In this document: positions 10,901 to 48,700 of the stretch, in pieces | Numbering within the stretch: the first letter of the stretch is position 1 | Layout of the letters: each line of letters opens with the position of its first letter | From: Bugula neritina | Taxonomy: Eukaryota > Animalia > Bryozoa | DNA: 64,000 nt | Direction: 5' to 3' | Assembly: GCA_964035545.1 (NCBI GenBank) | Contig: OZ037766.1 | Span: 13,010,722 to 13,074,721, forward strand | The notes under the pieces: generated by a model | Seen by the model: only the letters and a program-made list of their open reading frames with translations | The model's database searches: none | What the model was told of the DNA's origin: nothing | Program-made: the position numbers and the translations under genes

Positions 10901-10959
10901 AATGAAATAGCAATAAATTTTCATCATTTATAGCAGTTATCTGCTTTAGCTTATCACCA

Positions 10960-11830
10960 ACTTCAAGTGATCACTATAAGTATAAGTATAAACCATTACT
11001 GATTACCATGTCATACTGAATCTGATAATCATAGTGATACTCAGTCTCATACTGATACTGATGCCGATGGGCTCAGGCTGTGATAGTGATGCTCGTAAGC
11101 TTTTCATTTTAGTTTTAAACATTAAGTTTAAGTGATTGTCATTATAATAATCAAATTGCGATTATGACTATCATTATCATAAAGTGATTATCTTTACGAC
11201 TATTACTATTACTATTAGTAATAGTATTACTATTAGTATAAGTATTAGTATTAATATTATCATTGATGATTGAATTTGATTATTGTGTTTATTACTAATA
11301 CTAATAGTAATACTATTAGTATTAGTATTACTACAGTATTAGTTATAACTTCAAGTCTAATATTACTATTACTAATAGTAATACTAATAGTAATAGACAT
11401 ACTGATAGTAAAATACTAACATAAACAGTAATACCTAATAATCATAATGATGCTAATAGTAATACTAATAGTTATACCCATAGGCCATAGGCATAGTGTC
11501 AGATTCAAATTACACTTAATAATATGTCTTATTATTATTACTATTAGTCTTAGACAGTTAAACTCAATGTTATTACTTACAGTTATAGATATTACTCTCA
11601 CTAAAAGTAAATTAAAATTGCTAAAGCATAGAGGTATTATTATTAGTATTACTATTAGTATTATTATAACTTTGTAAGTAAAGCTAAAACCAAGAATGGT
11701 AGCTAAATAACTAATTTACTAAGTTAAAGTTATTTAGTAAGAGTAAGCATTACAGATTACTATTGGTATTAGTATTACATTTAATGATTTATTTAGTTAC
11801 TAACTAATACTACTAGTATTAGTATTAGTA
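10960..11830. repeat. Degenerate hexamer-periodic (TNANWN)n tract in NAT9 5' intron
   Basis: tgatac tcagtc tcatac tgatac tgatgc; taatac taatag taatac; ttagta ttagta ttacta. Confidence 0.8.
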
Positions 11831-12685
11831 GTATTACTTTAATTAATATGATTCTTGCTTTAGTTTATACAATAGCATAAACTGAAAAAAGTTTTGTGGA
11901 AATCCTTGACACTCACAGTGACACCTATTATCACTCAAGACGGTTTTGTTATTTGATGTTTGGGTACACTGTGCTGTGCATCTGGGTATTGGCAATTAGT
12001 TTATTGGTAATCGTCAGCTATTTCAATGTTATGTTTCTCAAGCTTAAAGGTGTTATAAAAGTTTATAAAGCAGCTCTCGTAGATATGAGGATGTGTTGCT
12101 CTACAGTTTACAGTCAGTAATTCTTTAGCGTAGCTCTGTTGCAATAGTCTGAAGAAGCAGCACTGAAGGCAAATATGGTGTTTGCAGCTAAAGTTTCGGT
12201 TTTGTTATCCTTATTCTTTGCCAGCCAAACTTGTTCAATATGCCCTTATAGGGGCATATTGAGCTTTTTTTTTATAGAAAAATAGTACCAGTGTACCCCA
12301 TGCTTGTCTGTTTTCTTGTCTAAGTGCGATTTTTATTATTCTGCTTTTGACAATTGAGTTAATAAAAATACTGTGCCGATGAGCGCAATTCATAAATCAA
12401 GTCAAATTTCTGTGGATATAGAAAAATGGTTAATTTAAAAATAACTATATGATCACAGTTGCACATATTATTCTTTTTGCATTTGAATTATTGCCGATGC
12501 AATCTTGTGTTTCGCATAGAAGCCAAGGTTTAAGTTAAAATTAGTAGATGGCAGAGCTTGTGTACTTAAACTATTATACAAGGTATTTTCACCTCTTTGA
12601 TTTTGGCAAGTTTATTAAAAAGGTACCTAGTTAGACTTGCTACATTGACTACTGCATTTACAGTGAGCTGGTTGATGAAAAAGCA

Positions 12686-15153: not shown

Positions 15154-16206
15154 TTATTTCCTTTCAACAGCTTTTCTTCTCTGCTAGTATGAAAAGTTTG
15201 TATTTAATCGTCTATACAAATGTTGGTATGAGAATTAAGCGCCATTGGTGCTATTTATTCCCAGCAAGATGTCGGGAGCCCTGTTCAACTGATGTACTAC
15301 TAATCTAATTTTTCGGGAAATGACTCTCACTGTATGAAGTTGCAAAACTCAATGTATAGGCGTATTACCTATCAACACATTTGTCTGACATAGCTTTAAT
15401 GTCACACATTCACGCTATTGTAGCTTATAAAGTGTAATATTTTGAATCATGGTATTAATTATGTCAATATCTTGGTCATACGCATTTCTATTGAGAATAA
15501 TTTTACTAACTCACATAATGAACTGATGTCATTATTCAACAACTTAGATAAACTCTGACTATTTAAAGTTAGTATGGATTTTTTTAATTTTTTGCATCAT
15601 TTTCTGTAATAAATCACTGTTATTTTGAGTTTGCACATGTGTAGTCAATTTTGTGGGTTTATTTCTGAGTACAACCCTTAGCAGTCTAAGCTTAATCAAT
15701 AGACAAAAATAATAGTTTCTTATGTGAGCAAATAAAGAAGTATCGCAATTAGTACTAATCAATATTTTCAATGTGTAATTATAAATACAGACTGTGAATA
15801 ATGCTGTTGATTTGTTGCAGAAGATGAGCCGACTCCAGTAAGCTTATAATTGTAGCCTGGAGCTAGTAGAATATACATTGTATTGATGGCAAATATAGCC
15901 ACCACCCAACACTATCATGTCCTGTTACAGGGCAACAGCCTTGATAACCACTATACACTGTTTCAAGAAGATGGAACAAAATATACATGTATTACATATA
16001 TACAAAACATATAATTATAAAAGAGGTTCTCTTGCCCTATCACAATTTTCATACAGCAGCAGAAAACTGATTAACTAATTTATATCATCAGTAGACTGAG
16101 CACAAAAAGGCATGGCATGCCAATTCCACAAGCCATCTATATATGTATGTATATACAAGCATTTACAACATCTAAATAAATTAAATTACAAGTCAGTTTG
16201 GTAGCA

Positions 16207-19200
16207 TCAATATCCTGAAGACTCCAAGTCACTTGCAATAGGAAATGGCGTATATTGACAATCTGTGTCTTCCTCATCAGTGGTAACATGATTCACGAGA
16301 TGTGACAGCGCATCATTTATGGCATCAGCTGCATGAAACAACTCTTGAAACTGGCGTTTAGTTCTACTATTGTAGCCGGATGATGAAGTTGAGGAAACTG
16401 AATGCTGAGGTGTAAGTTTAGGTGATGCATTCACAGAGCCACTAGAATGAAGCCTTTCACGTTTAGGAGTAAATGGTGATTTATATTGCTTCTGAATGGA
16501 ATTATTAGGATGATACAGGGGTGATGAGTGCACTAGTCCATTAGAATTGTCTCTGGACTTTAGCAAACCCATTAATCTTTCTAGCTGATCCATTAAATCT
16601 TTGCGCCCATCTTGGAGTTTGTTCATTCGCCCCTCAAGTTCACCTTTATGTTGTTTAAGCATTTGTAACTCAAAAATCAAATTGGAGTTTCCGTAAGAAG
16701 CATCTTCTGCTTGCTTCAAATGACTGATTTGTTCCATTATTTGTCTATTACTCGCTTCTAACTCATCAATTAAATTTTGATGCACTTTAAATTCTGCACA
16801 CTGCTGTAAGGAGTCTATGCTGCCCTCACAAGAACTATTGCCATTCACAAGATCCACCTCACATAGTTTACCTTCATAACTAAACAATTTGGCAGCATAC
16901 CTTGCAATAAGATTATGCTCATCATCAATTCGAGGGGCTTCCATGATTTCACACTACAATTTAACAGTACCACATCACTTCACAAGGGTCATTTCCAGCT
17001 TACTGCAATGAAAAATATATTGAACATATAATCAAGACTGTTGTACTATCCTATATACTTGAGCAGTTAAAAAACTAACAAGAAGCAAAAAAATGTTTCA
17101 TAGCACAACTTAATAAAAGGTGCTGAGTTGCTTCAATCCAATTGAATGCCTGAATATTAGATATGAAACTACATTTATCATATTCCTTACAGCTAAAATT
17201 TTGCATAAAAGTTGTGAAATAGAGCAAGCAATATTGAGATTTCTTATCTAGTTTTAAACAGTTGACACATCAAAATTGAAAAAAACAGGCTTATCAATAG
17301 AGCGATTAGATCAACAGCTAATAACCTACAGTATTCCTGTTTACTAATCATTAGAGAAACTTAGGAGGAACCTTAAAACAGTTGTTCTTATCTATAACAT
17401 GATTGACCAAAAGGGAGTAGCTATGATCTAGCGATAAGAGTGCTGGCCTAGTTTGATACACATGCTAAATCATGAGCTCAAGGCCATTGACAACGTCATT
17501 TCGGGCACCCAGTTATAATGACCCCTGTGGTACAAGCAAAGCTCTCAAACATTGTTGCCAGCATAGTGAGAGGCACAGCCCTTGTGCCACTTGAAAAATC
17601 TTAGCAACAGAGGTTTACAGGGATGGAGACTTTAAACAGAACTGAATAAATCCTAACTTCATTATTATACCATTTTTTTACATCAACTGAAAAAAAAATA
17701 ACTGGTGTTGTCAAACTATTCTAGTTTCCTAAGGCTACAGTAAACAACACAAAAACAACTTGATATAATTTCAAAAAATGAAATATTCATTAGTGTATAT
17801 TATAATATTATTATGTTACGATCAACTTTTCTGCTGAACTCATAGTATGTTCAAAATTTTTAGCAAGATAATGCAACTGAAGTGGTAGTATACCGATTGA
17901 GGCAAAATATGACCTAATTAATGAAAATATCGTATTTTTGTATGTGTATGAGACCATCCATCGGTATACTACCACTTCAATTGCATTATCTTGCTAGAAA
18001 TTTTGAACATTTCAGTGAAGCTAATAAACACCGAATGAGAATAGCAAGGAATATACTTGTAGTTAAGGCTAGTATGATTAAATGTATTTATATAAATTAA
18101 ACTGTTAATTAAACTGAAATATTGGTCATGTGTACATTTGGCGTATAAATTTTGAGCACGAAATCTGCAAAGGGATAGTATCTAAAATTGACATACTTTT
18201 TCATATGAAATTTTAATGGTAAATTTCTTTAGGTAGCAGAAGGTATTTTAGATGCTTTCCTGTTTTTATCGCTATCTTTTAAAAACTTTTTACATATCAA
18301 GCTGCTCATTATTTTCACATGATTTTAATTTTTTTACTGCTCATGCTGATACATGAGTGCCCTGATTCTCTCATTTAGTATTTTATGTCTTTTTGCTTTA
18401 ATTGTTACACTTTTTGGTCAAACACAACCTTTGCACAGTTGCTACACTACACCTGAATTTACAAATGTATTGTTGATCATTTTGACAAATAATTGTTATA
18501 CTGATAGACCTTCAAGTATCAAAATGTAAAGCAAACGCGTTCTGCAAGTTCATTCTCTGAAATCTGATTATATAATCTTATTCAGCAAAATAAAAGATAA
18601 AAAGCATAGGTTTTAAAATCAAACCATTTATAAAGTCTCAATCACCCAATAATATTCTACATTATTACACAAATTATATTTATCGCACTAAGTTACAATC
18701 AGATATCAGCAGGAGCTTTCTACCTCAAAACTGATACAATTATATTTGGCGAACTAATTCTAGGCTCCAAAGACTGAGCCGTCGATTACATCTGTTTATT
18801 GTTTTTTGCTCGCACAGTTTTCATAATACCAGAAGCTTATGTCAAAAAGATTTGCTTTGCATTTGTTCAAGATTGTTTCCACTACAAATTTTATTATCCA
18901 TATTACATCTAAAAGACAAATAAAGCAGTTACATCTCTTTTGATACTGAAAATTAGCTATATTGCCTGCCCATACTACACGTAATTTCCAACATGCAAGT
19001 CTAAAGATTTTCAACTTTTCCTAACTAATTCCATTGTTCAAATAATCAAAACAGCAACGCTAACTGCATGAAAGAGATTGAAAAGACAAAAATATGTATA
19101 ACAAAACTAAATTCTACTAGCTCTACCACAAGCATAATATTGTGCAAATTGCTTTGCTGCATTTCGAATTTTGGATTGACAATTCAGATTCTTATATATA

Positions 19201-20335
19201 ATTATATGCCTATGGGAATGGTAATCAGACATTATCATTATGATTATCATTTATTACTAGATAAAAATCATTACTATAAACATGATTATAACTATTAACT
19301 ATAAATCATTAATTTTCATTATGATTATAATAAGTAATACTTATAGTATAAGTTATACTAATAGTAATAGTTATAGACACAGTGATAGCTACTGATAGTG
19401 TTATACTGATAAACCATTATAATAATCTTAGTTATAGCATTGGTAGAAGTTAGAGTTTTAGTTATAATTATAGTTATACTTTAAGTTTAAGGTCTTGAGT
19501 TCAACTTAAACTTATAAGTTATACTTATACTTAAACTTTAAGTTAGGCTAATCTTATACTTATAGCAACTTATACTAATACTTAACAGCTAAAAGTTAAA
19601 GTTAATTCTATACTTAATCTTATAGTTAATGATAACGTAATCATAATGTTAATCACTTCAAGTTATTGTTAATGTTATACTTATGTTATAGTTATATTCC
19701 TAGTCATATTCATATACTATAAGTACACCTGGGGCTAGTCCTATGAGTCATACTGTATGAGTATCAGTAGGCCTATGTCAGTATGTGCTGTAGTAATATT
19801 AATACACTACAGTAAATATATATTAAATTAAAATATTTAGTCATAATCAGATACTATTACTATTAGGAATACTAATAGTAATACTAATAGTAATACAGTA
19901 TTAGTATTAGTATTATTACTATTACTATTAGTAATACTAATACTATACTAAATCTAATACTAGTAGTAACACTAACTGTAAGAGTATTACTATTAGTATT
20001 AGTATTACTATTAGTATTACTATTAAGTATTAGTATAAGTATTACTATTAGTATCATATTTAGATTCACAATTATAATATTTAACGCTATTTAAAATCGT
20101 TGGTGTAATTAGAAATAGTTGAATACTGAAGTTGTTAGTGCTCGGTAGTGAGTGGATTCATTTAGTACGCAGGCTTTTGATTGTTTTGAAGTTTACACTC
20201 AGTGTGAGTATGAGTTAGCACCTGCCACTTTCGATTGGTTACAGCATCAGCATGTTCAATGAAAGGCTTCGTTTCCTCAGAGTTATCCCGTTTAAGTCGC
20301 CGTGTACACTGGTTAAGATACAGCGATTCCAACAT
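16207..20335 (-). CDS. Dystrobrevin C-terminal-like coiled-coil protein; main exon 16953-16207, putative first coding exon 20335-20222
   Basis: DDEHNLIARYAAKL, ELEASNRQIMEQI, ELQMLKQHKGELEGRMNKLQDGRKDLMDQLERLMGLLK and ELFHAADAINDALSHLV match dystrobrevin C-terminal motifs. There is an acceptor at 16954. The upstream exon joins in phase 0 but is less certain. Confidence 0.75.
17413..17620 (+). mobile_element. Possible degenerate tRNA-derived SINE
   Basis: A-box-like tgatctagcgataaga and B-box-like gagctcaaggcc sit in a GC-richer island. The evidence is weak. Confidence 0.25.
17847..18010. repeat. Inverted repeat / MITE-like foldback (~50-bp arms, ~65-bp spacer)
   Basis: atgttcaaaatttttagcaagataatgcaactgaagtggtagtataccgat ... 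atcggtatactaccacttcaattgcattatcttgctagaaattttgaacat. Confidence 0.85.
19200..20075. repeat. Degenerate hexamer-periodic (TNANWN)n tract in first intron of the dystrobrevin-like gene
   Basis: ttatac ttatac ttaaac; ttaatc ttatag ttaatg; taatac taatag taatac; ttagta ttacta ttagta. Confidence 0.8.
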
Positions 20336-20520
20336 GTTTATTTTTCTTCGTGTTGGAAAATTACTTCTATGCGTTAGTGACACGTACGTAGTAAACAAGC
20401 AAGACTAAGTATATCAATATGGTTATATAATAACTATCAGTTTCCTAAAGTCTAATTAGTACTGTCAGTTTGATTAAACCTTAATTGTGTTGTTTGCAAT
20501 AAATAACTCTAAGCCGTAAG
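20336..20520. promoter_or_regulatory. Probable bidirectional promoter of dystrobrevin-like (-) and DERL1 (+)
   Basis: CpG-containing island between divergent genes. Candidate DERL1 non-coding exon-1 donor gtaagc at 20516; acceptor at 26411 just before the ATG. Confidence 0.45.
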
Positions 20521-20559
20521 CGAGATTTAATTGAGTTTGACTATCTTATTCTTTATGGA

Positions 20560-20700
20560 CCATCACACTGAATCTGATCACAGTGTGAGTGACAGACTGA
20601 GACACTGACAGTCACAGTGACACTCGCACACTCACAGTGACACTGAGTTTGACAGTGACTGTGAGTGATCACTCATCACTGATCAGTAATGATTGATTGA
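20560..20700. repeat. (TNANWN)n tract, left flank of full-length LINE
   Basis: tgacag ac tgagac ac tgacag tcacag tgacac; tcacag tgacac tgagtt tgacag tgactg tgagtg. Confidence 0.75.
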
Positions 20701-21103
20701 TTTCCGGTTTCGATAATGGAGAACGCCAAATTTTAAACTTTCAAACAATTTAACGTAATTTCAAAATTAGGTCGCTTATAGTAATACTAGTAGAGGCAGG
20801 GGTGTGCTCATTAATTTTTACTCAAACCCTAGTCTATTGTGAGTCAGTAATAAACACAGAATTTAGTACCCATCGAAGAGATTCAACCTGAACTTCCGAC
20901 TGACTATCAGTATCACTCCATTATAAATTTTTAGTGCCGCCTAGTTGATAGTATATATTTTTAGTTAGTAAACGCAGTAGTACTATTAGTAATACTGTAT
21001 TAATAGTAGATGTAATACTAATATATATTTTTTTATAACGATAATCACTTATCATATTGACAACTACCAGTAGTTGCATAAAAGTAATTTAATAAATAAA
21101 GGA

Positions 21104-22049
21104 ATGCCATCTAAGAGCAAAGATAAGTGCGCCTATTGCAACCTGAAGGCTGATGAGCAAAAATGTCATGTGATGATACGCTGTGATTGCTGTGAGGCAT
21201 GGTATCACAGCCAATGTCAGGACCTCACCAAATATGAGGCAAATCTCATCTCTAGCGCAGAAGGGAAAGGAGTAAGATGGTTCTGCACTAAATGCATACC
21301 GGAACTGGTAATTAATGCAGACTCTCAAGACCAAACTAAAGCTAAAACTTCAATTACCGAACTAAAAGAAAAGCTGGAAGAAATGAATCTGTTAACAATG
21401 AACAAACTTAACGATATTGACCGAGCTGTTAAAGGCATGCAACTCACGTATGCTGATACACTAAAGAGTAACAATGAGAACATAAAGTCCCTAGAAGATC
21501 AATGTTCCAAGCTTGTTGAGCAAAGTACGGTGCAAATGAATAAGGCTGTTGAAGTAAACATAAATGCTGAGAAGTTGATGCAGAAAAGTAATGAAATAAG
21601 TGAGGCAGATGCCAGAAAATGTAATGCTATTCTATATGGTGTGCCGGAGGGAGATGAAATACCGGTACTAGAGCAGGTCGAAAAATTCATGAGAGAAGAA
21701 AGATTCAAAAACCTTGACAAACCTCATGCAGCCTTAAGACTCGGGAAAAAAAAGTGCGGAAACCGCTAGACCCATAAAAGTTGTCTTTGAGACTATCCAA
21801 TCTAAATGGGCCTTCATAAAGAGGGTGAACTCTTGGGGACTTAAAGGTGACAAAGTCTTCTGCAAGCTAGATGCCAGCAAGGAAATCCGCAACCAAGAGT
21901 TCGCCCTCCGTGAGTGTGTGCGTGGACTGAAAAGTGACAACCCTGGATCTGCATACAGAATAAGGAATCTGCAAATTGAATGTCAGCAACCCTCGGGGGA
22001 ATGGAAGCGTCTGACGCCGGCATTAAACAGTGTAGTGAGAGCCCACTAG
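21104..22049 (+). CDS. LINE ORF1p (PHD finger, coiled coil, C-terminal domain), split by one extra A in the A8 run at 21746-21753
   Basis: CAYC..CDCCEAWYHSQC..WFCTKC is a PHD finger, followed by NAILYGVPE and RLGKK. Removing one A restores RLGKKSAETARPIKVVF..VFCKLDASKEIR..SGEWKR. Confidence 0.88.
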
Positions 22050-24766
22050 CCTTATTTTTGGCAAACTCCAGGTCTGTTAAGGGGAAAACGGCCGAAGTTC
22101 AATTCATTACATCTGAATATGATATAGTTTGTTTAGTAGAAACACATATTGATGACACTATAAACAACTGTGACATTCTCTCTAGCCAAAGCAAGACCAT
22201 ATTTAGATGGGATCGTAATATTCATGGTGGCGGGGTCCTTATAGCAGCAGCGAATTCGCTTCAGCCAACTAAAGTTGAACTAGACACTTTGGGCGAAGAA
22301 ATGGTTGTAGTACAGATCAAACATAGCATTATAATATGCTGCTACTATAGACCAAACATATCAATGCTAAACATGGCAGCTTTGAGAAATGTCATTGAAC
22401 ACATCACCAACAAATACCATCATCATTCCATCATTCTTGTTGGTGACTTTAACCTTCCTGAAATAGACTGGGAAACCAGAAAACTAAAATATGGTGCAAA
22501 ATTCAAGTCTGTACACTTGGACTTTCTCACCATGTTATTTGAAAACAGGATGCAACAACTTGTTACGCAACCCACTCATATTCACGGTAATATCCTGGAT
22601 TTAATCTGTACCAATAACACAGCGTTAGTCACAGATATTGATATAATATCTCCGGGTCTCAGTGATCACTACATCGTCACTGCAGTGCTTACCTGCCATA
22701 GACCAAATCTCTTAAAAACACAACCGAAAACAATTAAACTATACAAAAATGCAAATATAACTGGTTTCAGAGACAGTATGCAAACTGTCTGTAACAAACT
22801 TAAGGACATGTCAGACCCGGACAACATGTGGCTCCTTTTTAGAGAAGGTCTTGCGCAGGCTTGCAAAGATCACATTCCTACAAAAGTTTTAAAATCAAAA
22901 AACTCTCGCTGGCCTGTTTGGTTTGATAAGGAGGCAAAGAAGCTTGCTCAAAAGCAAAGAAAAACTTGGTTTAAGTATAAAAAAACAAGGGATGTGTTTT
23001 TCTTGGAGAAGTATAAAACAGAGCGAAAATCTTGCAAAAAATTGCTTCGTCACAAAAAGAGGAACTATGTAGTTGAGAAGGTATGTAAACCATTAGAGAG
23101 GGGAAATTCCAAGCCTTTTTTCAAACACCTGAGGCAAAAAACTGGTCAAGATAATATTTCCATGTCTCTTACTGACCCTGATACTAATCAACTAACTGAC
23201 AACTCACTGAGATGCGCTGAAATCCTGAACAGTTATTTTTATAGTCAGTTCTGCCAAGATCACCAGGTGTCACAATATCCAAATTATAGCAGTGATACTC
23301 ATAACATATGCATATCCATCAAGGGGCTTGAGTCACTTATTAGAGGATTGGCAAATGGTAAATCACCGGGGCCAGACGGCATAAGAAAACCAGACCTATT
23401 AGTTGATACTGAAATAAATGCCACTTGTCTTCAGCACATATACCATGCCTCACTTAAATCTGGAAAACTACCAAGAGATTGGAAACTTGCTAATGTAACC
23501 CCAATACATAAAGGAGGAAGCAAGGAATCACCACAGAATTATAGGCCTATCTCTCTCACAAGCATTCCGTGCAAAATGCTTGAGCACATAATCCTGCACT
23601 ACCTGAATGCAACCCTTGACAATATACTTCACAACAGGCAGCATGGTTTTCGGAAGGGAATGTCATGCGATACTCAGCTGTGCTCAACATACCATGACAT
23701 TGCCAAAGCGCACGACCAATCACAAGACACACATGCAATTGTTCTAGACTTTAAACAAGCATTTGACAAAGTCCCCCATTCCCTACTGCTACTGAAACTA
23801 CGTCGCATTCCAGAAGTTAACCCACAGATTATAAATTGGATTCAAGATTTCATCACCAACAGAAAACAGAGAGTTGTAATTAAAGGCTCATGCTCAACTG
23901 AGCTCCCAGTAACATCGGGCGTCCCCCAAGGATCTGTACTAGGACCCACACTATTCTTGGTTTATATTAACGATTTACCAAGTTGTGTCAATTGTTGTGT
24001 CAGTCTTTATGCAGATGACACCCTGTTGTACCAAAGAGTAAACTCAGAAGCAGATGCTGCAGACTTCCAGGTCAATATCGATGCAGTATATAACTGGTCC
24101 CAACAGTGGAAGATGCCTTTTAATGAAAGTAAATGCCATGCTATATCATTTGGTCGCCAAACAAGCCTTCCATCTTATAAGCTTGGGAGTACACCTGTCC
24201 AATGGACTGAAGAGACCAAGTATCTCGGTGTGACCATGCAGAGTAATCTAAAATTTGACCAACACATTGTGCTGAAATCACAAAAAGCTAGCAGAGTCCT
24301 AGGAGCAATCAAGTTTGCTCTCCATGATGCTCCAAAAAATGGCAAACTCTTGGCTTACACCAGCCTCTGCCGTCCATTGTTGGAGTATGCAGATACCCTC
24401 TGGGATCCTTATTTAAAAACCACCATACATAATATAGAAATGGTTCAGAATCGTGCTGTGAGGTTCATATCAGGTCTCAAGGGGCGAGAGAGTGTTAGTG
24501 ACGCTCGATGCGAACTGGGTCTACTACCATTGCAAACGAGGCGTAAAAATCATAGGCTCACACTATTGACACGTATTCTACAGTCTGAAGCCACGCACAG
24601 TACACTTTCATCAGACTATGATGAGGTTGTGGAAAATCGCTCTCTCATGTCCGTAGCTACGAGATCAGCAACCCAAGGTTTACCCAACTCCATTTCTTCT
24701 CACTCTAGCTGTTACCACCAAAGTTTCTTACCAAGAACGATACGCGACATGAGAGGATTTACCTAG
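22001..24766 (+). CDS. LINE ORF2p: AP-like endonuclease and reverse transcriptase, intact
   Basis: Uninterrupted ORF with LVETH, GDFNLP, SDH, NYRPISLTS, QHGF, DFKQAFDKV, GVPQGSVLGP, YADD, YLGV and SFLPRTIRD. The ATG at 22001 is conserved in the other copies. Confidence 0.97.
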   Translation: MEASDAGIKQCSESPLALFLANSRSVKGKTAEVQFITSEYDIVCLVETHIDDTINNCDILSSQSKTIFRWDRNIHGGGVLIAAANSLQPTKVELDTLGEEMVVVQIKHSIIICCYYRPNISMLNMAALRNVIEHITNKYHHHSIILVGDFNLPEIDWETRKLKYGAKFKSVHLDFLTMLFENRMQQLVTQPTHIHGNILDLICTNNTALVTDIDIISPGLSDHYIVTAVLTCHRPNLLKTQPKTIKLYKNANITGFRDSMQTVCNKLKDMSDPDNMWLLFREGLAQACKDHIPTKVLKSKNSRWPVWFDKEAKKLAQKQRKTWFKYKKTRDVFFLEKYKTERKSCKKLLRHKKRNYVVEKVCKPLERGNSKPFFKHLRQKTGQDNISMSLTDPDTNQLTDNSLRCAEILNSYFYSQFCQDHQVSQYPNYSSDTHNICISIKGLESLIRGLANGKSPGPDGIRKPDLLVDTEINATCLQHIYHASLKSGKLPRDWKLANVTPIHKGGSKESPQNYRPISLTSIPCKMLEHIILHYLNATLDNILHNRQHGFRKGMSCDTQLCSTYHDIAKAHDQSQDTHAIVLDFKQAFDKVPHSLLLLKLRRIPEVNPQIINWIQDFITNRKQRVVIKGSCSTELPVTSGVPQGSVLGPTLFLVYINDLPSCVNCCVSLYADDTLLYQRVNSEADAADFQVNIDAVYNWSQQWKMPFNESKCHAISFGRQTSLPSYKLGSTPVQWTEETKYLGVTMQSNLKFDQHIVLKSQKASRVLGAIKFALHDAPKNGKLLAYTSLCRPLLEYADTLWDPYLKTTIHNIEMVQNRAVRFISGLKGRESVSDARCELGLLPLQTRRKNHRLTLLTRILQSEATHSTLSSDYDEVVENRSLMSVATRSATQGLPNSISSHSSCYHQSFLPRTIRDMRGFT

Positions 24767-24940
24767 CTTACCTATCAATTTTCTTTTTAAATATCACTAT
24801 CTAAATTGAATAATATCAGCGGTAATGCGGAAGCACTAAAAAAAAAAACGGAACACTCACTGTCACACACATGAGGCGCTCTACTAACGTCATATGATGG
24901 TCAAGAGCGTTCTACCTCATCAGAGGTAATCAGAGGTAAT

Positions 24941-25360
24941 TATCATGCGTCACCGCGACTGAGTCTGATGACTGATACTGATAGTCATCACTCATCTAGT
25001 ATCGGTATCAGTATCACTCATGAGTCATAACTGAGTTCAAGTCTTGAGAGTTATGACTTAGTCTTATGAGTTATGAGACTGAGTTAGACTTAGAATATAA
25101 CTATAAGTATCAGTATAATCATTGTGTTTTTCATTATGATTATGTTTATGACGTTGATCAAGATCATAGTTATTAAATTTAATTATTGTTGATGTTAATA
25201 ATTATAATAAATATAATAATATTAGTAATTTTTACTATTAGTAATACTAATACAAATAGTAATACTAATAGTTGTACTTATACTTATAGTAAAACTGAAT
25301 ACTTATTCTCATAGTCATAGTAGCCTAACTCACTTAGTCAGTCATATCTGGTAATACGCA
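24941..25360. repeat. (TNANWN)n tract, right flank of LINE, DERL1 5' intron
   Basis: tgagtc tga tgac tgatac tgatag; tgagac tgag ttagac ttagaa; taatac taatac aaatag taatac taatag. Confidence 0.78.
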
Positions 25361-26434
25361 ACACTAACAGTAATACGAATGGTGCAAAATTCCAGCGTGC
25401 CTCTTGTAGTTGTGCTGTTTTTGTTTAGATTTATCATACATTGTGATTGGAATAAATTAATTGTAGTATGCAGCTAAGTTAGTTTTTAGGTTTTTTAATT
25501 AAATGTGTTGAATATGTTTTAGCACTTTGCAGTTTGCAGGGGATGCTTGTCAATCAAATGGGGTGATAATTGATCTGTTGATAGCAAATTAGACATAACA
25601 ATACTATTTCTAACACTAATAGAATTGTTATTAGTAAAAGTTATAATTATTGTAATAGTATTAGTTAATCACTTAAACTGGTCAAGTTAATGTCATTCAT
25701 TAAATTTAGTTGGTTAGGTATTAATATATTAATGATAATATAAAATAATTTCACTTATTACCAAGTTTAAGTTATAAATATTTGTTTCATTAATTGTAAT
25801 GTCAATACATTGCTCTCTCATTTTATTACAATGCTAGCGTGTGGTTTGGACATGCACATTTTTATTTTGAGTGATTGGTATATATGATTGTGATAATGGT
25901 GAATCTGTAATTTAAAACTGTTTGGTCATTTGATTTTAACCCATCAAGGTTAGCTTTGTAATTTATATGTTTTTTTCTCCAATGCCAATTGCTATAAATA
26001 GTAAAGCTAGAATTTTAATTGAGCAATTCTAATTGTAGACCTTAATTTGAGTTTTCAAATTTTTTTTCAAATTTGCAACTCTGTGCCAGTCTGGGGGTTT
26101 TTTCGAAATTTTGGAAATTTAGTGTGATTCGAAAAAGAAAACCGTTGAATCAATTCAATGCTTCAGTTCTATAAAGTCAATTGTAGAAATTTTTGCAATT
26201 GTAAGTACTTAACTTGAAGTCAATGTGACAGCATTAGTAGCAAATAGCAGTGCTAACTATGGATTTTAATTTTTCTCACTCGCTTTTGACTTGAATGTTG
26301 CATTCTGCAAAAGATATAACTTTTTCAAATTAATATTCAGTTCTTAGCTAGCACAGGGCTGTTCATGAAACAATACTTTGGTTTTTGTATCTTTTGAAGT
26401 TTATTTTGTAGATTTCTTCTGATGATCTTTAAAT

Positions 26435-29794: not shown

Positions 29795-36335
<6,541 letters not shown>

Positions 36336-39360: not shown

Positions 39361-42300
39361 GGCAGAAGTATTTTTATCACAAAGTCTACAATCAATCGGT
39401 AAAATACTTGCAAGTGTAATGTCTATACAACATGACTATCCCATGTCAACACTTGAGTAACACTATACTTAACACATCACACCAGCAAGTTGTTCTCTTG
39501 ATGAATAATTTATGTCATTTTCCCTTAGCAGAACTATTATTTCAAATGACTGAGTATTTGCTTGTCATTTGCTGATTCCAAGTATAGTTTAATCAAAGTG
39601 CAAGCTCATGTATATTTTACATGCATCAAGTATGACTTTTAAATCAATATCCATGGTTAGTAGCTGGCAAGCTAATAATGAAGAAAATATATTGTTAATT
39701 TGTGGTCAAATGTTGTATGGGACTAAATTTACTCTAAGTGACTAAAAAATAACTTTGGTAGACACTAGACTTAATGGAAAATAGCTTCGAGGTGCAGATT
39801 TAGTTTTACCCACTCATTTATCAACGTATAACCAAGGTTAATTTTGATAACCATAATATAATTTCATAAATGTACTAGTTAGCAGTTACAATATTTTTAA
39901 ACCATATAACATTCAACCAATGTTTGTAATAATTAAAGAGAAACAATATAATATATTACAAACACATTATGTAAATAAAACAATTACTTACTATTACAAC
40001 TGATGCAACTTATAAGGTGTACAGTGCACGACGAAGTAAACTATCCTGCTTAGATATCAAACTATTTTTCTGCTAATGCTGCCCATTTTTACCAGATTGT
40101 AGCTGATTTAGTTTTTATAAATGTTTACTTTCAAATAACTACTAAGCTAGTGCTGGCATGCTATCACTACTCACTAGAAAATGTGTCTAAGAATCTATCA
40201 GCCTACAGTAAATATTAAACTCCCAAAACAGCATAATATTATATGCCTGTTACTACTAGAATACTTTGTATTTGCGTTATATGGAAAGTGCTTATTATAA
40301 TTCTTTATTAGTTTAGAATCGCTCAAAATTGATAGCAATTGTTTTCTAGAAACCTACTTAATTTTTGACAATGGTTAAGCAACTACTGTCATCAAAGTTC
40401 TTATGATAGAATTTCAGGTCCCCCAAAACAACCAAAACAGCTAAAAAGCTAATCATACAGATGATTAATACTTTTTGAAAAAAGTTGCCTCACAATAATT
40501 AATAAGTCAATAACTACTGTTGAGACATCTAATATGTATTTCATAGATTTATTTTTCATTTATCCTACCAAGTAATAACAACAAATATGTTTTATTGGTG
40601 GCTCCATTATAAAAGCTAAACTGCTAGCATAAACTTAAAATATTGAAACTTGATAACTAATGTTTTTGGACACAAATTTACCTGAAGCAAATAAATCCAA
40701 AGATGGAGCACTCCGGCACAAGCTGTCTTATCAACAACAACCGTTCATTTAAGAAGCAATCATTCAGTTTATGATATAACGCAAACTCTCATAGTAAAAA
40801 TCAATAAAAATAGTAATTGGTGTGCATGTCAGAAAGGTAAGAAGAAAATTATTAGTTTCTGAGTATTTAGACCAACAAATTTAATTGCTCAGAATTCTTT
40901 AAAAAAATAATAACAGCTCATAACGCAACAGGAGCTGTATGTGATATGATGAGCTAGCTGTTATTGTTCAAACATTGAATACCTCTATATATAGTATTAT
41001 AATAATCATTATACATGGTTTGTGCAGGTGCAATCTTGGATAATAAGATCAATCAACCTAATGCACTTCTCACAGACTGCTAGGAAATCTTCACAAACTG
41101 TTTAACAGTAATGAAATATTTGCTTCATGGCAAGAAGGTAGTTGAAAAACTGAACAACATATTTACAGACGAAACTTTTGATAATTTTCACTTATTTTAC
41201 ACCAATATTACATTGAAATCTACTTATATACCTTGTCCACACTCACTGCGGAAAGCTGATATCAAACACTCTTTCACTATAAATTGGTATATGCTTAGCA
41301 CTTGACAAAGATTACCTTATCAGTGCAGTGCAATATAAATACGACTATATGCATCTATATTAAAAAAGTAAAATTCTATATAATTTTATTTGTCAAATAG
41401 ATGACTAATTTATATGCTGCCATAGTTATATACTTTATTAGCTTTATTTCTATAATAAACAAAGGTGATTTTACTTTGTTCTGGTGCATTGTTGGTGAGA
41501 ATGCAGCTGCGGTGCAAGTAAAGATGATCTACAAAGTTTTTTAAAGACCATCTGACTGCTACAGAATTCACTTGATCAAATGATCAAGATACCCAAACTT
41601 ACTACAATATATAACAAAATGGTGTGTGTGTTGTGTGTGTGTAAGTATAGTCCCATAGCCCAATATGAATTGATGCAATATTATTATAACAGAAAATAAT
41701 GAAGATATCAAAGTTATCAAGCAGACAATTTCATTCTTGCAAATGTATATATTATACACTCTAAATAAAACAATGATCAGTAAATGTTTAAAAATATGCC
41801 ATTGTGTAAACTGTAAACATCATTACAGCAGTGGTGTTTTTGCACACCTGAACACATAAATTCCTTTAAAAACTAAAGTGCTTCATACTATGCACTTCGT
41901 ACACACACAACATTGCCATCATGCAATAACTCTTCCTTGAGCAATAAGTAAAATTTATAAACTTGTAGCTTGTGTTCTTATATGTGTCCTTAATGCATGC
42001 ATGTATTTTCAATATACAATGCAATAGATATCCATGTAGTTTATAAGGAGTACTATATTTGCAGCTCTATAACATTATTATCGAAATTTCATAATTAAAT
42101 GCAAAAATAAGCGCATAACGTCTCCACATAAATATGATTTTCTATGAGATGATCTAGTCTTATGGAAACAGAAGGATCCATTAAGCAGCATGCTGACATC
42201 ATATTATTCAGTCAATGACTTTATTATTGATCTTGTTTAAATTATAAAATTTATTCAATTCATGGTATTGTGTACACTCGACAAATAATATCCCCTCTTA

Positions 42301-42380
42301 GAGTTGAAGAAACATTCTATAAAAAGAGAGACAGTTCATAGAACGCAAACTAAATGTCAATCTGAACTATTTTTCCAGTA

Positions 42381-45347
42381 CTAATGATCACATTCTTTGT
42401 AAAACCTAAGTCCACAATATCCACAGGTGTGATTCCCAGGTTGGTCCTAAAATAAAAAAAAAACAATTTATAAAATTATTCAGTTTCTAAATGTCTAAAA
42501 TTAGCAGTGATTGAACTCTGTTTGATTATAACCTAGACATTTTGACTAGTCAATAACACATTATGATTATACTGCTCCTACAAATCTTAAAAATTTGAAA
42601 AAGCAAAACTACTTTTAACCTTTTAATGCCATTTATTCAAATGCACAAGCCTACTACACTGACAATTTAGCAATTGTTTTAAAAAGTATATAATAAAATT
42701 TTCATCTCAAAAATAGGCTTAACCAATGAAACAGACGACAAATCAACACTATAATCTAATATCAAAAATGTTTAAAATCAGATAGAATAACTTGACAACA
42801 TTGTGTAAAACTCTAACAATGTGTTTCCTTGGTTTTTACAAGTTTGGTAAAATGTACACTTTTATTGCTTGGTATAATACCATTAGCATATAGAGATGAT
42901 ACTTTGAACCATCCTGCTTAGCTTACTACTGCCCATGCAGTGTATACAATGAATAATGATGTAAAAGTAACGAAAATGAAACAGATAAGCATTGGGAAAT
43001 TTTTAGTTTTTCAAAAAGCACTTTTACGGAAAAAATAAAAATGGATAGTTGAAAAGTTTTAAGCGAAAAGCAATCTATAAAATCAAAAATACTGACCAAA
43101 GAAAAATTACTACACAAGAAACATGTATATTTGGCAGGATATAAATAGTGGCAGTTGTAATTGTGGCGATAACAGTAGGATTAGTAGTGGCTACAGTAAC
43201 AGCGAAGAAGAGTTATCAGCACATTTCACACAAGAGGAAACAACTCCAGTCAAATTATTTTAAAATTTTTCAAGTCTTTGAAAATTGAACTGAAACGCAT
43301 TAAAGGATTGCTCAATCTTAGTTTATTACAATCACATTATAATTATGAACTATAATCTAATGTGTATGCAAACAATTGTGACGTTGCAAAGGGATATGTG
43401 CCTAGAAAACAGCTTTTCAAAATTCCAATTTTGAGGGAGGTAAAATTTTCAGCCATGAAAAAGAATATGCTGCACGTGCTAACTATAACGCTAGTATTCA
43501 AGGTTGCTGAGCACAACATCAACCAATAACGCTCAAGCAGTTACAGTGCGTTATATAGGTCAGCTTTGGTGTGCCCGTAACATTGCACAATCTGACCTAG
43601 TTTAGATCGATCGCAGGCATTCATCCTAAAGAATGCATGTTTTTGCAATGTTTTTTTTATGTTTACAAGCAAAATATGGCCTAATGTTATCACATACATG
43701 TTATTTAAAATGTCAAAAAACTATAGATTGAGATAATTCACATTTGCACTTCTATAAATATATACAAATTACGAGCTGAAAGATCACATCTCACAGTCAT
43801 ATTTCTATAGTTATTCATTTGTATAGTCACGTGACCAGCAGGAATTCTGGCGCTGTTACGTCACATTTCCCAGCTCATTTCAAAATCGGCGTTTTGGCTG
43901 TTACCAATCTACACCCTCAACTTCAACTAACTTTTTCTACCTTTGGTCAAATGCTTTTTGTCAATGCACGCTTAGAAAAACACAATATTATGTGTGTTTG
44001 ACCTAAATGGCCATTTATTAGACAACATAGAGCAATCCTTTAAACCTACAAATGTTTCCATCCTTTCGCAGTATTACTAATAATGCCTTAGAAATATGTA
44101 CATTGACAAAAATTAGGTATGAAATAATGCAAATTGTCTTAAACTAATTGCTGATAAACTCACCAAGTTTATGTAGACCTTTGGATGTCCTAATGGTCCA
44201 CCACCACCATCACATGACACTACACGGCTGGTACTACCAACAGGAGCAACAGTAGCTATAAGATCAATAGCGAATCGACTGTTAACTTGCTTCTCTCTGT
44301 CCACAAATCGAACTAATCGCTTGTCATCGTCTTTCCATTGCTGTAATATGTTAATATATTCTGTGACGTAAATGAAAAGTTCGCAACAATATATTAACTG
44401 GTATGCTTGAAATTTAAATATGATCATGAGTCTTTTTGAGTTAGATTTCAATCAGAAAATCAGATCTTCTTTAAAAAAGTATAAATTGTAGCATACAAGT
44501 AATAAGCAAAGCTAGAATAAACACTCAATTGCTACAGTGAGTGAGTGTGAGTGTTAGTGTGAGAGTGTAAGTGAGTGTGAGCAAAAATAGTCATAGTTAT
44601 TGAATTGATTAAAATAACAAAATTAGTTTTTTGCTTTAAACTAAAACTGTTAAATATTTTAGAGGAAAGACAGGCCTGTGTTTGAACACTTAACACATTA
44701 ATTTGCCTAGCCGTGTGAAGTAGCCCTCTGTCCCAGAGCTAACAAGACAATTTCAACATTTACTATAAAACTAAATAAGCGAAGTCTGTACTTTTCATTT
44801 TGAATTTTAACCTGGTCAAACTTCAAACACATTTGGTTTGACATCCCATAAGGCATAAGTCAGTCAAAACATACCAGACACAGTCAAACTATTAAAGCAC
44901 CTTCACAAAATTTAGCAGGTTGTTTCAAGCAAAGAGAATCAATTTAAAGTACATGTCTGTAAGCGTTTATGACTGGGAATCAGCTGACAACATGACCTAG
45001 CTCAGAACAAAAATACCAACAGCAACAAAAAGTATGAATAACCATCACCATGTATTATGTTTAATTTTATCATTATCATTATGATTAATATTATTATTAT
45101 CCTTATCAGCTTATGCGATTTAATCATTTGATTTATGAATAATGATACTCATGTTTATACTTATATTTATAGATAATAGTCACCACAAACTAACAACTAC
45201 GTTAAGTACCTGGCCAGTGTGTGTTTGTTTATCTTGCGGTGCTGACAGATAAATATTTATATTGGTTGAGAAATATCTTCCAGTTTTACAAGTACTTGGT
45301 AGAGTTCGTTCAATACAAGAAGTGCACAATTTTAGCAAGGCAGCCAT
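42381..45347 (-). CDS. NDUFS6: NADH:ubiquinone oxidoreductase subunit S6; exons 45347-45210, 44340-44164, 42446-42381
   Basis: THTGQ|[49 protein letters not shown]|[15 protein letters not shown] (zf-CHCC). Confidence 0.96.
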
Positions 45348-45743
45348 AGTGATACTGGTAGCGATAATCGTCAATTTAGAGACAAATTTTGACAAGTAGT
45401 ATTGCAACTTGTAATAAACCTAAAATAATTAGTTATACTTGATGTTAAATCCACTGAAATATAAATTTATATTCCAGTGGCTTAATCTACTAACACTTAT
45501 AGTTATTTTCGACAATTGGCGATAACTTTAATAATATGCCGGAAACTTCACGGGTGTTTACCTTCACGGAATGAGTGCAGCAACTTAGACCAATCACAAT
45601 GCAGTATTCAACTTCTTGTCAAATCAAAAGCTTGAAGTGGTTCCAATACTTTACTTCTGTCTGCTAGGTATAGCTATATACACTTCTGATTCCTGACTAT
45701 GTTTTCTTAGGAACACCTACTAAGAATCAACTCTACTAGAAGC
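45348..45743. promoter_or_regulatory. Bidirectional promoter NDUFS6/RRS1
   Basis: The two ATGs are only 396 bp apart, head-to-head. ETS-like ccggaa at ~45539, ccaat at ~45590 and ~45643, and local CpGs. Confidence 0.75.
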
Positions 45744-48700
45744 ATGGCCGAAGTTCAAATAGACACAGCTGAAATTCTAAGAAATGTTACAGAAAAAGAT
45801 TCTTTGTTTAAAACAACAGTTGTCTCTAAAGAAATAAACCTTATATTAGACTTGGGGAATCTACTAGCTGTTGACGAAAATGTATTAAAGGATAAACAAA
45901 TAAGGTAAACACTAACAACCAACAGTAATAAAAATATTTAATTTGCTGAAATAAAATGAAAATTAAAATATCAAATTCAATAAATGTATCATTATTATTC
46001 GTATTTATATTATAAAATTGAGTTAAACTAATAATTATAGTTAATAAGATAAAAAAATTCACTTTAATTTATTTTTAATTCAATAACAAACAAAAAATAA
46101 ATACAATTGAATAATTATAAAATTATAAATCAACTTCAATGAATTCGGTAACGAAAATAAATCTAATATTAAATTATTTCACTTTATATACTTATAAATA
46201 TATAATATAGTTTGATAGTATTAGTTATAGTAATGATAACTATTATAATAATAATTATAATAATATAATAATATTAATTGTTAATATTGTAATGATTTTT
46301 AATAGTTGTCGTCATTATGTTCTGAAAGTTCTAGTAATTATTATTATATCGCGTCATTATCATAATTGATTTGGTGTAACTTTTTGAATGCTGTTAAATG
46401 TTGTAATTATAGCTAAGCTCTTAGCGTAGTGAATAGCGTAATGATTGTGAATTGTCCTTCCTACTTTTGTGTGCTTTTATAAAATACTGTAATAGTTTTT
46501 GTTGAGTTGTATTCTCCCCCCCCCCACTTTTTTGTAATAATCTTTAATAAGTTGTGTGAGCCGAAGTTCAGAACCTAGGAGCTCGATTTCGGAAAGGCCT
46601 CTCCGATTTCAGACAGATCCTTTTAATTTCAGCGCCTGAAACTCCGAATTTCAGAAGCCCTAAGTGGGGGAAAACTTGTTGGTATATAAGTGGGAGAGTT
46701 TCCAGTGCTAAGTCAGTCTAACACTGGAGCTCAACCAAAACTCATATATAGAAGAAATAAAGACACACATTATCTGGACTCAAGAAAACTTTTATTTGAT
46801 TAACATAGTATAAGGCATGCAGACTGCTTAGTCTATTTCATAATAATTCCCCCCCCCCCTTTACCACGATAATATATTCAGTTTAAATTTCTCATTAATT
46901 ATAATTAAATTTAACATTGTTAGTCTTATAGTTATACTTACAGACTTATGAGTGATTTATACTAATAGTAATAGTTCTAGTTTTACTTTTATTATTAGTA
47001 AGTCTAATACTAATAGTCATATTCATATTGTTATTAACTATAAATATAACTTAGTTATATCAAAGTAAAAATTATGCTTCAACTTATACTTATAGTAATA
47101 CTAATGATAATAAATATATATATATGTATATAATTATAAGTTAATACTGTTATTATATTATAACTATACGTATGACTATAAATTAAGTATACTATTAATA
47201 TATCTACAGCTATAAGTATAAGTGTATAAGTATACTATTAGTATTGCTATTACTAAATACTAATACTGCAAGTGTAAGTCTTAAGACTATGATATGCACA
47301 TACTGTTGCTATTACTTATTGTTATATTATAGTTATATTAGTTAAAATAACTTTTAAGAATAAGTTATAACTTGAATTAAGCTGTGCTATTACAGTATCA
47401 CTATTACTATCAGAGATAACAAACTATTGTAGTACTGTTACACATTATTTTAATAATCATAAATAATTTTATAATGAATATTTTCATGTTGATTATAAAG
47501 TTTTTTCTTTCTTGAACTAAACTGGGCTTGGGGACCACACTCCATTTGGGCCAGGGTCCGTGCCAGTTCCACCACTAGTTCTTATTGCTAATTCAATGCA
47601 AAGCTAGAATGACTCAGCTTGACTCAGCTATATAGCAGGCTACTGTTGGCCATTAAGCTGTTGCATTAGAGAATAGCCTTTATTTAAGCTATTTATAGCA
47701 AGCCAATGACAAATACAATTAGTAATCAATATTCTAATAGGCATAGACCCACAAGGTTGGTTGGTAGTGGTTGGTAAACCATTGGTTACTGATTGATTCC
47801 TGGATATACGTTGGAAATAAAGATGAAATCCAACCTGGCCTAGTATTTTATTCAGTGGTAAATGAGTATCAGACTCTACTTATGCACCACAATTGGTCCT
47901 AAATCTTGAGAACGTGAAGTGAAAACTTCATATTGATTATTATGCATTACGTTTATTATTTATTACTATTTGCATTGCCTAAGGCTAAAGACTTATTTCA
48001 GTATCTGCCTAAATATCCTAAGACTGATGATTTATTCATTTAGTTTACTATTTTGTTTTAGTGCAAAGAATAACTCAACTTATTTATTGAATTTAAACCG
48101 TGAAAATGTACAGATCTTGTTGAACAGTATATGGGAGGTGAGGATCATTCAGTTATTTTATAAAGCAGCACATTACAGTGTTGTACTCACTTGAGATAAC
48201 CATAAAAGGTGTTAAATCAAATCATAGTAACATTTTAATACTTGTTCTTACTTGTTAATAGCTGTTTATGTTTACTGTTGTGATTTTTATAGAATTCGTT
48301 GACTTATGAGTATAGATTACTAAAGCTTTTGTCTAGCTTACAGTAACCAATAAAACACATATATATAATATGTTGATGTTGTTTTATGCACTCTTCTGTA
48401 GCAAGATAAGGAGCAGAAGAAACAACTACATATTGTGGTTGTTGTTGGTGTATAATATACGTAAATGTAATGTTTTATATTAGAAATTGTCCTGTTTTTT
48501 AGCTGCCATCAGAAAGAGTGGAAGATGCTATCTTAGTTCCTCTTCCTCCACCTACTACTGAAATTCCACGTGAAAAGCCTGTAAGCTGTGCGATAAAATC
48601 ACACCAAATCTCTACTAATTTAACTGTCATTATCTACAGTTTCCAAACTGTTTAATATTTATAATGCATACAACTGGTTTTTATTTGTATTGACTCACTA

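Follow-up and report, generated by a model that had tools for sequence, protein, structure and literature searches.

Period-6 self-complementary tracts behind first exons of Bugula neritina and a possible strand-symmetric duplication-and-flip regime at gene starts

Introduction

Several described kinds of DNA combine short-period repetition, intronic position or closeness to promoters. In hexanucleotide microsatellites and cryptically simple sequence, 6-bp units stand head to tail and resemble their neighbours, while the periodic An/Tn clusters (PATCs) of Caenorhabditis elegans are A+T-rich intronic DNA with a period of about 10 bp, built of A/T runs and associated with protection from silencing. 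In template switching at quasi-palindromes a base comes to complement its mirror partner, and AID hypermutates only the 1.5-2 kb that follow a start site. Short tandem repeats are enriched near promoters in other animals (PMC3566118; PMC10027321). Here we analyse a stretch of 64,000 nucleotides from the bryozoan Bugula neritina (the window: contig OZ037766.1, positions 13,010,722 to 13,074,721 of the forward strand, GenBank assembly GCA_964035545.1), which holds tracts of 6-bp units that lie behind first exons, follow a grammar that is its own reverse complement, and differ between neighbouring units chiefly by the exchange of a base for its complement.

The assembly comprises 216,009,554 bases with nine chromosome-sized contigs; the published genome note gives 216.00 Mb and 9 pseudomolecules (PMC11480708). 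A preliminary description of the window had reported tracts with a T-N-A-N-W-N grammar (W, A or T; in what follows S, C or G), had placed them just behind the first-exon donors of housekeeping genes, and had offered three readings: a chromatin or promoter-licensing element, an array for a polymerising DNA-binding protein or DNA-modifying enzyme, or the scar of a template-switch or insertion process coupled to transcription start sites.

A self-complementary lattice of 6-bp units

Direct reading of the window found period-6 tracts at the places described before, and Tandem Repeats Finder (TRF) returned arrays of period 6, 12 and 18, the period-6 arrays reaching 34 copies at 65-84% match. A caller free of motifs and annotation, which scores the excess of lag-6 identity over lags 4, 5, 7 and 8 in 72-bp windows, covered 6.5% of the window, compared with 0.013% in ten third-order Markov simulations. 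Its intervals at 3632-4003, 10985-11679, 19303-20093, 20558-20681, 25065-25335, 29990-30522, 44523-44606, 45016-45120, 46216-46293 and 46940-47316 agree with the preliminary description, and it added a tract at 62002-62223, outside the range covered there. Identity at lag 6 is 0.54 inside tracts, compared with 0.28 at neighbouring lags window-wide; lags 6, 12 and 18 are all elevated, and lags 10 and 11 lie at background (0.285 and 0.280).

A de novo expectation-maximization (EM) search from random starts converged twice on the profile A(.79)-S(C.37/G.43)-T(.82)-a-W-t, and this A-[C/G]-T-n-W-n unit equals the previously reported T-N-A-N-W-N lattice after rotation. The lattice fits 72% of hexamers in tracts versus 39% outside them, and, among hexamers with three G/C, 42% versus 9%. 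The grammar is shared between tracts and symmetric between strands, as had been proposed: 9 of 12 oriented tracts lack strand skew (GC skew within +/-0.11, with AGT about as frequent as ACT). The G/C-richer tracts at 62002-62223 (GAGTGA type) and 44523-44606 (GTGAGT type) have a sense-strand GC skew of about -0.6 and may belong to a different subclass from the symmetric A+T-rich tracts. Unit types vary widely among tracts.

The tracts are also present in independent sequence. A contig of 2,517 nt from another sequencing run (X1), about 98% identical to the assembly, covers 44040-46326 and carries three tracts; since the same tracts recur in a contig that has diverged by about 2%, they are not an assembly artefact.

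Complement swaps between neighbouring units

To characterize how units differ, adjacent units were compared at lag 6, with identical context demanded at +/-2 positions. In the window and, separately, in 33 other genomic loci, C<>G accounts for 33-37% of the differences, A<>T for 22-27% and transitions for 22-30%, complement swaps together making up 55-64%. C<>T differences are 3-4 times rarer than C<>G in the window; elsewhere they reach about half the number of C<>G differences. Whether a centre flips depends on its flanks. G/C centres flip at a rate of 0.45 between A_T flanks (n=341) and 0.42 between T_A flanks (n=128), compared with 0/17 between A_A and 1/33 between T_T; A/T centres, which serve as a control within the same lattice, flip at 0.23 (A_T), 0.22 (T_A), 0.06 (A_A) and 0.03 (T_T). 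A base is thus swapped for its complement only where both of its neighbours are mutually complementary, and a single complementary flank pair suffices. A spectrum dominated by complement swaps instead of transitions, with flips dependent on flank symmetry, is not accounted for by the usual decay of repeats.

The rule accounts for the EM profile, because the A and T beside the G/C position cannot flip, centres can, and the identity of a position as G/C or A/T is kept. Motif classes that differ solely in the flipped letter are equally frequent (283/248, 151/134 and 125/113). Flips at S and W positions are independent within units, showing no positive linkage (odds ratio 0.69), which rules out inversion of whole units, and general inversions of 2-3 bp are not in excess in tracts. 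Odd palindromes of 11 nt (arms of at least 5) are modestly raised, with 250 observed versus 208 in a flip-randomised null (z=3.4). Between X1 and the assembly, 71% of differences over 5.9 kb are transitions and 4% are C<>G, and the X1 contig has one 6-bp and one 8-bp deletion within tracts, few events in all.

Abundance and composition of arrays across the genome

Arrays of the lattice are abundant genome-wide. The pattern (ASTNWN)4AST has 25,437 matches per strand versus about 3 expected from base composition, although matches overlap and cluster, so that these and the following counts are not independent events. Genome-wide, (ASTWWW)4AST has 14,046 matches per strand and (TSAWWW)4TSA has 1,305, while (ASAWWW)4ASA has 680 forward and 185 reverse. 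Among 100 listed A-S-A matches nearly all are pure (ACATAT)n or (AGATAT)n, with C and G unmixed, whereas A-S-T arrays are C/G-mixed and 16 times commoner. The pure A-S-A arrays indicate that ordinary microsatellites occur in this genome and behave normally; only the lattice with symmetric flanks is mixed and hugely amplified.

The mixture is not random. Among the 14,046 five-unit arrays, a coin toss at the C/G letter would give 439 per configuration, and the observed counts reject it. Homogeneous arrays are about four times depleted (97 CCCCC and 128 GGGGG), and runs of one or two are favoured: CCCGG and CCGGG stand at 407 and 412, CCGCC and GGCGG at 517 and 513, CGCGC and GCGCG at 562 and 589, CCGCG and CGCGG at 638 and 606, and CGGCG and CGCCG at 777 and 792. 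In the T-S-A controls the all-C and all-G arrays are again the rarest (8 and 9 versus about 41) and most mixed configurations are in excess, with a different intermediate order. When new units were simulated as copies of their neighbours with the centre flipped in 70-80% of cases, the depletion of all-C arrays and the general excess of mixed configurations were reproduced.

Location of the tracts behind first-exon donors

Once the long interspersed nuclear elements (LINEs) described below are excised, the zones reaching 1.5 kb sense-downstream of seven first-exon donors, 19.4% of the sequence, hold 92.6% of tract bases. This enrichment was reached in none of 5,000 circular shifts (maximum 46.7%), a test that is not fully independent of the tracts, since three of the seven donors were placed partly from tract starts. 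The start codon and GT donor can be read directly for four coding first exons (FDX2, NDUFS6, RRS1 and an unnamed minus-strand gene), and these four alone show the same tract location as all seven. Tract occupancy is about 0.5 out to 800 bp from the donor, 0.3 out to 1.2 kb and essentially zero past 1.5 kb. The tracts had been assigned to first introns; they do stand behind first-exon donors, and distance describes them better, as they occupy the ~1.4 kb of non-coding DNA that follows the donor. The housekeeping character ascribed to the tract-bearing genes would follow from the identity of those genes.

The individual tracts illustrate this placement. The coding first exon of the FDX2-like gene (29795..29997, plus strand), with a presequence-like N-terminus and a GT donor at 29998, is followed directly by a tract at 29998..30660, as had been described. 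At FDX2 and DERL1 the AGT of the GTRAGT donor (GTAAGT in FDX2) is the first lattice core, and the lattice itself may just have supplied the donor. DERL1 has a G/C-rich lattice of TGACAG/TCACAG type (20558..20700) at its predicted first-exon donor; the tract continues past a LINE at 24941..25376 and ends, beyond an insert of ~200 bp, with a last piece at 25587..25667. Behind exon 1 of the unnamed gene (20216..20336, minus strand, ATG to GT donor) lies a tract at 19200..20215. NDUFS6 (coding first exon 45211..45346, minus strand, with a mitochondrial presequence) has a TTATCA-type tract at 45016..45205, which begins ~30 bp behind the exon-1 donor, and the GTGAGT-type tract at 44523..44606 in intron 1; RRS1 (coding first exon 45737..45905, plus strand) has a first-intron tract at 46200..47460, the lattice being weak over 45906-46200. 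In three to five of six cases the lattice starts no more than 6 bases from the donor. The first exons of NDUFS6, RRS1 and the unnamed gene were read from open reading frames and sequence.

Three head-to-head promoters are flanked by tracts on both sides, in agreement with the preliminary description. The start codons of NDUFS6 and RRS1 enclose a tract-free promoter of 390 bp (45347..45736). A second, putative bidirectional promoter, tract-free and CpG-richer, lies at 10361..10959 between the C5orf63-like gene (minus strand) and NAT9 (plus strand), whose first exons would both be non-coding. Its NAT9 side bears a tract at 10960..11860, of TGATAC type and then of ACTATT/AGTATT type. On its C5orf63-like side stand a short adjoining tract (10262..10360 in the preliminary description, weak in the callers), a remnant at 7017..7181 between two tail-to-tail LINEs, and a distal part of T-S-A type (TATCAT/TATGAT) at 3632..4003, separated from the promoter by the two LINEs. 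The GAGTGA-type tract at 62002..62223 lies 5' of a PXA-PX sorting-nexin-like gene. Most internal introns and the surroundings of a G-protein-coupled receptor (GPCR) gene had been described as free of tracts, and the caller agrees for the internal introns of FDX2, the GPCR surroundings and the bodies of RRS1 and the sorting-nexin-like gene, apart from two calls of ~78 bp at 43138-43216 and 55962-56039. CpG peaks were rejected as an annotation-free proxy for promoters, as LINEs and exons also peak.

Outside the window, N-terminal exons of Ras-family genes on the chromosomes provided 21 oriented 6-kb loci. Tracts cover 10.6% of the upstream 3 kb versus 3.1% of the downstream 3 kb, and are present upstream at 15 and downstream at 5 of the 21 loci. 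In the paired comparison, upstream exceeds downstream at 12 loci versus 3, with 6 ties (Wilcoxon p=0.012, sign test p=0.035). The 5' bias thus also holds, modestly, in an unrelated gene set. Six 10-kb regions at fixed, arbitrary coordinates are 5.1% tract. From 274 kb of DNA examined directly, which includes a genome sample of 190 kb, the tract class may occupy some 5-7% of the 216-Mb genome, a rough figure.

Mobile elements in and around the tracts

Three non-LTR retrotransposons in the window, identified by Pfam and with approximate boundaries, belong to one family, are ~66% identical to one another, and are each inserted within a tract. They lie at 4046..7016 (plus strand; APE endonuclease and reverse transcriptase, RT), 7315..10261 (minus strand; APE and RT) and 21051..24940 (plus strand; PHD-finger ORF1, APE and RT), the last splitting the DERL1 tract. 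The LINE 3' ends consist of a stem-loop (TACCTCA...TGAGGTA) and a 10-16-bp tandem repeat, after which the hexamer lattice resumes; in the third LINE the stem-loop is followed by a 10-bp repeat, not a hexamer. Because the tails are not hexameric and the lattice resumes behind them, the LINEs are insertions into tracts, and LINE tails were rejected as the source of the tracts. This LINE family may target the lattice or promoter-proximal DNA.

An element of ~200 bp resembling a miniature inverted-repeat transposable element (MITE) is found inside tracts at three unrelated loci (25376-25586 in the window, ~1912-2073 in locus L038 and ~5640-5740 in locus L041), its copies sharing 78% and 96% identity over 65-99 bp. 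LINE and MITE-like insertions of up to 3.9 kb are tolerated within tracts, which argues against a need for an intact array. Among the flanks of 109 tracts the only common family is one small element that sits within tracts, and inspection of the window tracts showed no DNA transposon within or next to them. Arrays carried by transposons were rejected, the flanks being unrelated between loci.

A 19-mer (AGCTTTTCATTTT, two free bases, TTTT) occurs at 11098-11116 and 30636-30654 within a similarity of ~50 bp. It was considered as the core of a mobile element and rejected, as it has 4 occurrences genome-wide, two of them these copies in window tracts 19.5 kb apart. The RRS1 tract is interrupted at ~46290-46860 by a high-copy repeat with C(9-10) runs, whose summed contig depth reaches 5,700-30,000 in all four runs.

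Genes of the window and other observations

Gene assignments were supported by Pfam searches run on each exon separately. These identified a glutaredoxin-like gene (the C5orf63-like gene; 1349-1588, minus strand), a NAT9-like GNAT acetyltransferase (plus strand) and a DER1 gene (DERL1, plus strand, ATG exon near 26435), whose first exons are all inferred to be non-coding. They also identified an FDX2-like 2Fe-2S ferredoxin (plus strand) whose Fer2 exon lies farther downstream of the first exon, a single-exon rhodopsin-type GPCR (38140-39435, minus strand), NDUFS6 (minus strand, match on the zf-CHCC exon), RRS1 (plus strand, match on a later exon) and the PXA-PX sorting-nexin-like gene (minus strand). 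The gene at 20216..20336 had been labelled dystrobrevin-like; Pfam returned nothing for it, and the label was not confirmed. A 17-bp tandem repeat at 63535-63695 (9.5 copies, 89% match) is unrelated to the hexamer lattice.

Pieces of exons and promoters from 43900-49800 recur at only 90-95% identity in runs X2, X3 and X5, which comprise runs under the same organism label and a 2016 symbiont metagenome; small parts of the window were matched in two runs labelled symbiont metagenome. Judged from sequence identity, this divergence is consistent with the cryptic sibling species recognised in B. neritina. Several small contigs of the assembly (C101, C110, C66, C160, C230 and others; loci L001-L010) carry intron-less, full-length Ras-family genes with many in-frame TAA/TAG codons and TGA nearly absent. 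The genetic code of these genes looks ciliate-type, and the contigs probably come from an associated protist and not from the bryozoan.

A proposed duplication-and-flip process

We propose that units of a self-complementary lattice have been duplicated locally, only in the vicinity of active promoters, and that the tracts are the footprint left behind; we give this reading a probability of about 40%. The tracts would form a genome-wide class of simple sequence in which the hexamer consists of two A-N-T triplets (A-S-T and then A-W-T, or a T-S-A variant) and the lattice is identical on both strands. Arrays would grow as units are copied from their neighbours, and a base pair between mutually complementary neighbours would be re-set to either orientation (C<>G or A<>T). 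Such re-setting would keep both the G/C or A/T identity of the position and the flanking A and T while the letter flips. Flips may stem from the ability of the lattice to pair with its own complement, as a fold-back or cruciform or as an inverted-register heteroduplex in repair or replication. In such self-pairing only the triplet centres would mismatch, and correction or a short template switch would flip a centre to the complement of its partner. Self-pairing of this kind would account for the flank rule, for the shift of arrays away from all C and for the modestly raised number of 11-nt odd palindromes. We further suggest that only the ~1.4 kb of unconstrained DNA next to germ-line-active promoters, on their downstream side, undergoes the process or tolerates what it produces; unwinding, negative supercoiling behind the polymerase or promoter-centred breaks there are possible causes. 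The tracts would then record mutation at gene starts instead of carrying a sequence-specific code.

Several observations weigh against this proposal. The flip-copy simulation over-predicts strict alternation and under-predicts CGGCG, and A/T centres flip half as often as G/C centres, for which the model needs an extra assumption. Long palindromes (arms of at least 8) are not in excess, with 34 observed versus 33.8 in the flip-randomised null, and long hairpins were rejected on this ground. None of the seven listed X1 differences inside tracts is a flip, in a small sample in which X1 covers no tract that is a clean A-S-T array; flipping would accordingly be tied to the birth of units, or be old. 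Finally, the 5' link is based on one window and one gene family, and the six arbitrary regions already contain 5.1% tract.

Alternative explanations

A different account would make the tracts a functional promoter-proximal element, in which a selected A-S-T/A-W-T lattice offers an array to a protein that binds A-S-T at 6-bp spacing, or positions nucleosomes downstream of the start site through special DNA mechanics, and the choice of C or G is neutral. We regard this as unlikely. Selection would suit the ~80% conservation of the A and T beside the G/C position, the retention of G/C at 80% in a genome of 67% A+T, the regular placement behind the first-exon donors of all seven multi-exon genes with a 5' end in the window, the absence of a tract from the single-exon GPCR, and the tens of thousands of arrays. 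Point mutation and selection, however, cannot randomise C and G, the rarest substitution class, while unselected positions of neighbouring units stay alike, and neutrality at that letter does not predict all-C and all-G arrays below coin toss. A 3.9-kb LINE moreover displaces 430 bp of the DERL1 tract from its promoter with no apparent harm, and the variety of unit types among tracts also speaks against a selected element. Scars of repeated insertion and excision of cut-and-paste transposons near promoters, in which target-site duplication leaves a footprint and hairpin or mismatch resolution gives a base or its complement, are a distinctly improbable source. Excision footprints of hAT-type and Tc1/mariner elements retain the duplicated target and can bear a complemented central base, and many DNA transposons prefer the 5' ends of genes; the lattice contains target-like TA and T-N-A words, units resemble copies of their neighbours, and mobile elements do insert in tracts. 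Yet tract flanks share no termini or family, the one shared 19-mer is found only 4 times in the genome, no DNA transposon was seen with the window tracts, neither 2-3-bp inversions nor palindromic additions are in excess, and we know of no target-duplication length that yields 6 bp with a flip at a triplet centre.

The remaining accounts are less probable still. Decay of ordinary hexanucleotide microsatellites of several A+T-rich motifs, in long neutral A+T-rich first introns, would explain the TRF arrays and their 65-84% match, the 6- and 8-bp length differences between haplotypes and the promoter enrichment known from other animals. This reading is very improbable, and largely refuted already: the spectrum is dominated by complement swaps and not by transitions, flips depend on flank symmetry, the listed A-S-A arrays are nearly all pure while the mixed A-S-T arrays are 16 times commoner, homogeneous arrays are four times rarer than coin toss, and internal introns of similar composition lack tracts. 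We hold it no more probable that A-C-T and T-C-A are toggled from C to G by a transcription-coupled cytosine deaminase (AID/APOBEC-like), with base excision and bypass by REV1, each hit restoring a target on the opposite strand through the symmetric flanks. APOBEC and REV1 yield C>G at T-C-A, AID/APOBEC-like genes occur in invertebrates, lophophorates included, and the zone of AID hypermutation resembles the ~1.4-kb tract zone. Such an enzyme would leave the A<>T flips under the same flank rule unexplained, should hit the non-template strand and so produce a skew that the tracts lack, and should yield C>T at least as often as C>G, whereas C<>T is the rarer difference both in the window and elsewhere; the polymorphism spectrum seen with X1 is likewise ordinary. 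For a sequencing or assembly artefact of low-complexity DNA speaks only the general difficulty of assembling simple repeats, and its probability is close to nil given that the diverged contig of another run has the same tracts, that the grammar is too specific, and that the tracts recur across chromosomes.

Among the three readings offered before, the evidence leans to the third, a scar of copying at the DNA level, in view of the flank rule, the mixed A-S-T and pure A-S-A arrays, the absence of strand skew and the tolerated insertions. The insertion variant of that reading, with arrays borne by transposons or left as their footprints, found no support, flanks being unrelated between loci.

Implications

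More generally, and tentatively, bryozoan germline promoters may impose a previously unknown, strand-symmetric regime of duplication and flipping on the first kilobase or so beside them (roughly 5% of the genome and tens of thousands of arrays), or else the lattice may be a new promoter-proximal chromatin code. Should a real DNA transaction underlie the flip rule, the rule would be a new mutational signature, readable from a genome and coupled to unit duplication, with a bearing on the birth of simple repeats, template switching, mismatch correction in self-complementary DNA and the state of promoter-side germline DNA. Functional tracts would instead constitute a promoter-side sequence code of a kind not known elsewhere. 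In this lineage gene starts may be recognisable from the tracts without the need for RNA data, and LINEs and a MITE-like element would land in the tracts either by preference or because insertion there is tolerated. Annotation pipelines would mask the estimated 5-7% of the genome as simple repeat.

Comparison with described systems

A search of 8.4 million papers and preprints found no description of such flip-lattice tracts, and bryozoan genome papers, searched by term, do not mention such repeats, so that the earlier statement that no described equivalent was recognised still stands. New here are the flank rule with its control within the lattice, the A-S-A control, the departure of the configurations from coin toss, the 1.4-kb limit and the oriented Ras comparison.

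Known systems nevertheless share parts of the pattern. Like hexanucleotide microsatellites and cryptically simple sequence, the tracts consist of 6-bp units repeated head to tail, with similarity between neighbours, a patchwork of motifs, a few length differences between haplotypes and enrichment at promoters. Unlike microsatellites, their units differ by complement swaps at symmetric flanks, with a difference spectrum other than that of decay by ordinary point mutation, and pure arrays are rarer than chance. With the PATCs of C. elegans the tracts have in common that they are non-coding, periodic, A+T-rich intronic DNA tied to a class of genes, with a possible link to the germline. Their period is 6 and not 10, with lags 10 and 11 at background; they are built of A-N-T triplets and not of A/T runs, they are limited to ~1.4 kb behind the first exon, and nothing in the present data points to a PATC-like protection from silencing.

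Quasi-palindrome template switching and palindromic AT-rich repeats offer the closest parallel to the flip itself, in which a base becomes the complement of its mirror partner while the flanks stay unchanged in self-complementary A+T-rich DNA. In contrast to those systems, the tracts have no excess of long inverted repeats, the events fall on single triplet centres in a tandem lattice, and rearrangements were not observed. The tracts resemble immunoglobulin switch regions and the hypermutation zone in being repetitive intronic DNA behind a promoter and first exon, with strand-symmetric hot-spot words in a zone of 1-2 kb. They have neither a G-rich non-template strand nor strand bias, 9 of the 12 being unskewed, nor AGCT words, and they are germline and genome-wide. 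CpG islands differ from the tracts in grammar and process and lie over the promoter instead of beside it; like them, the tracts would be a compositional feature of promoters made, perhaps, by a mutational regime and not by selection on sequence.

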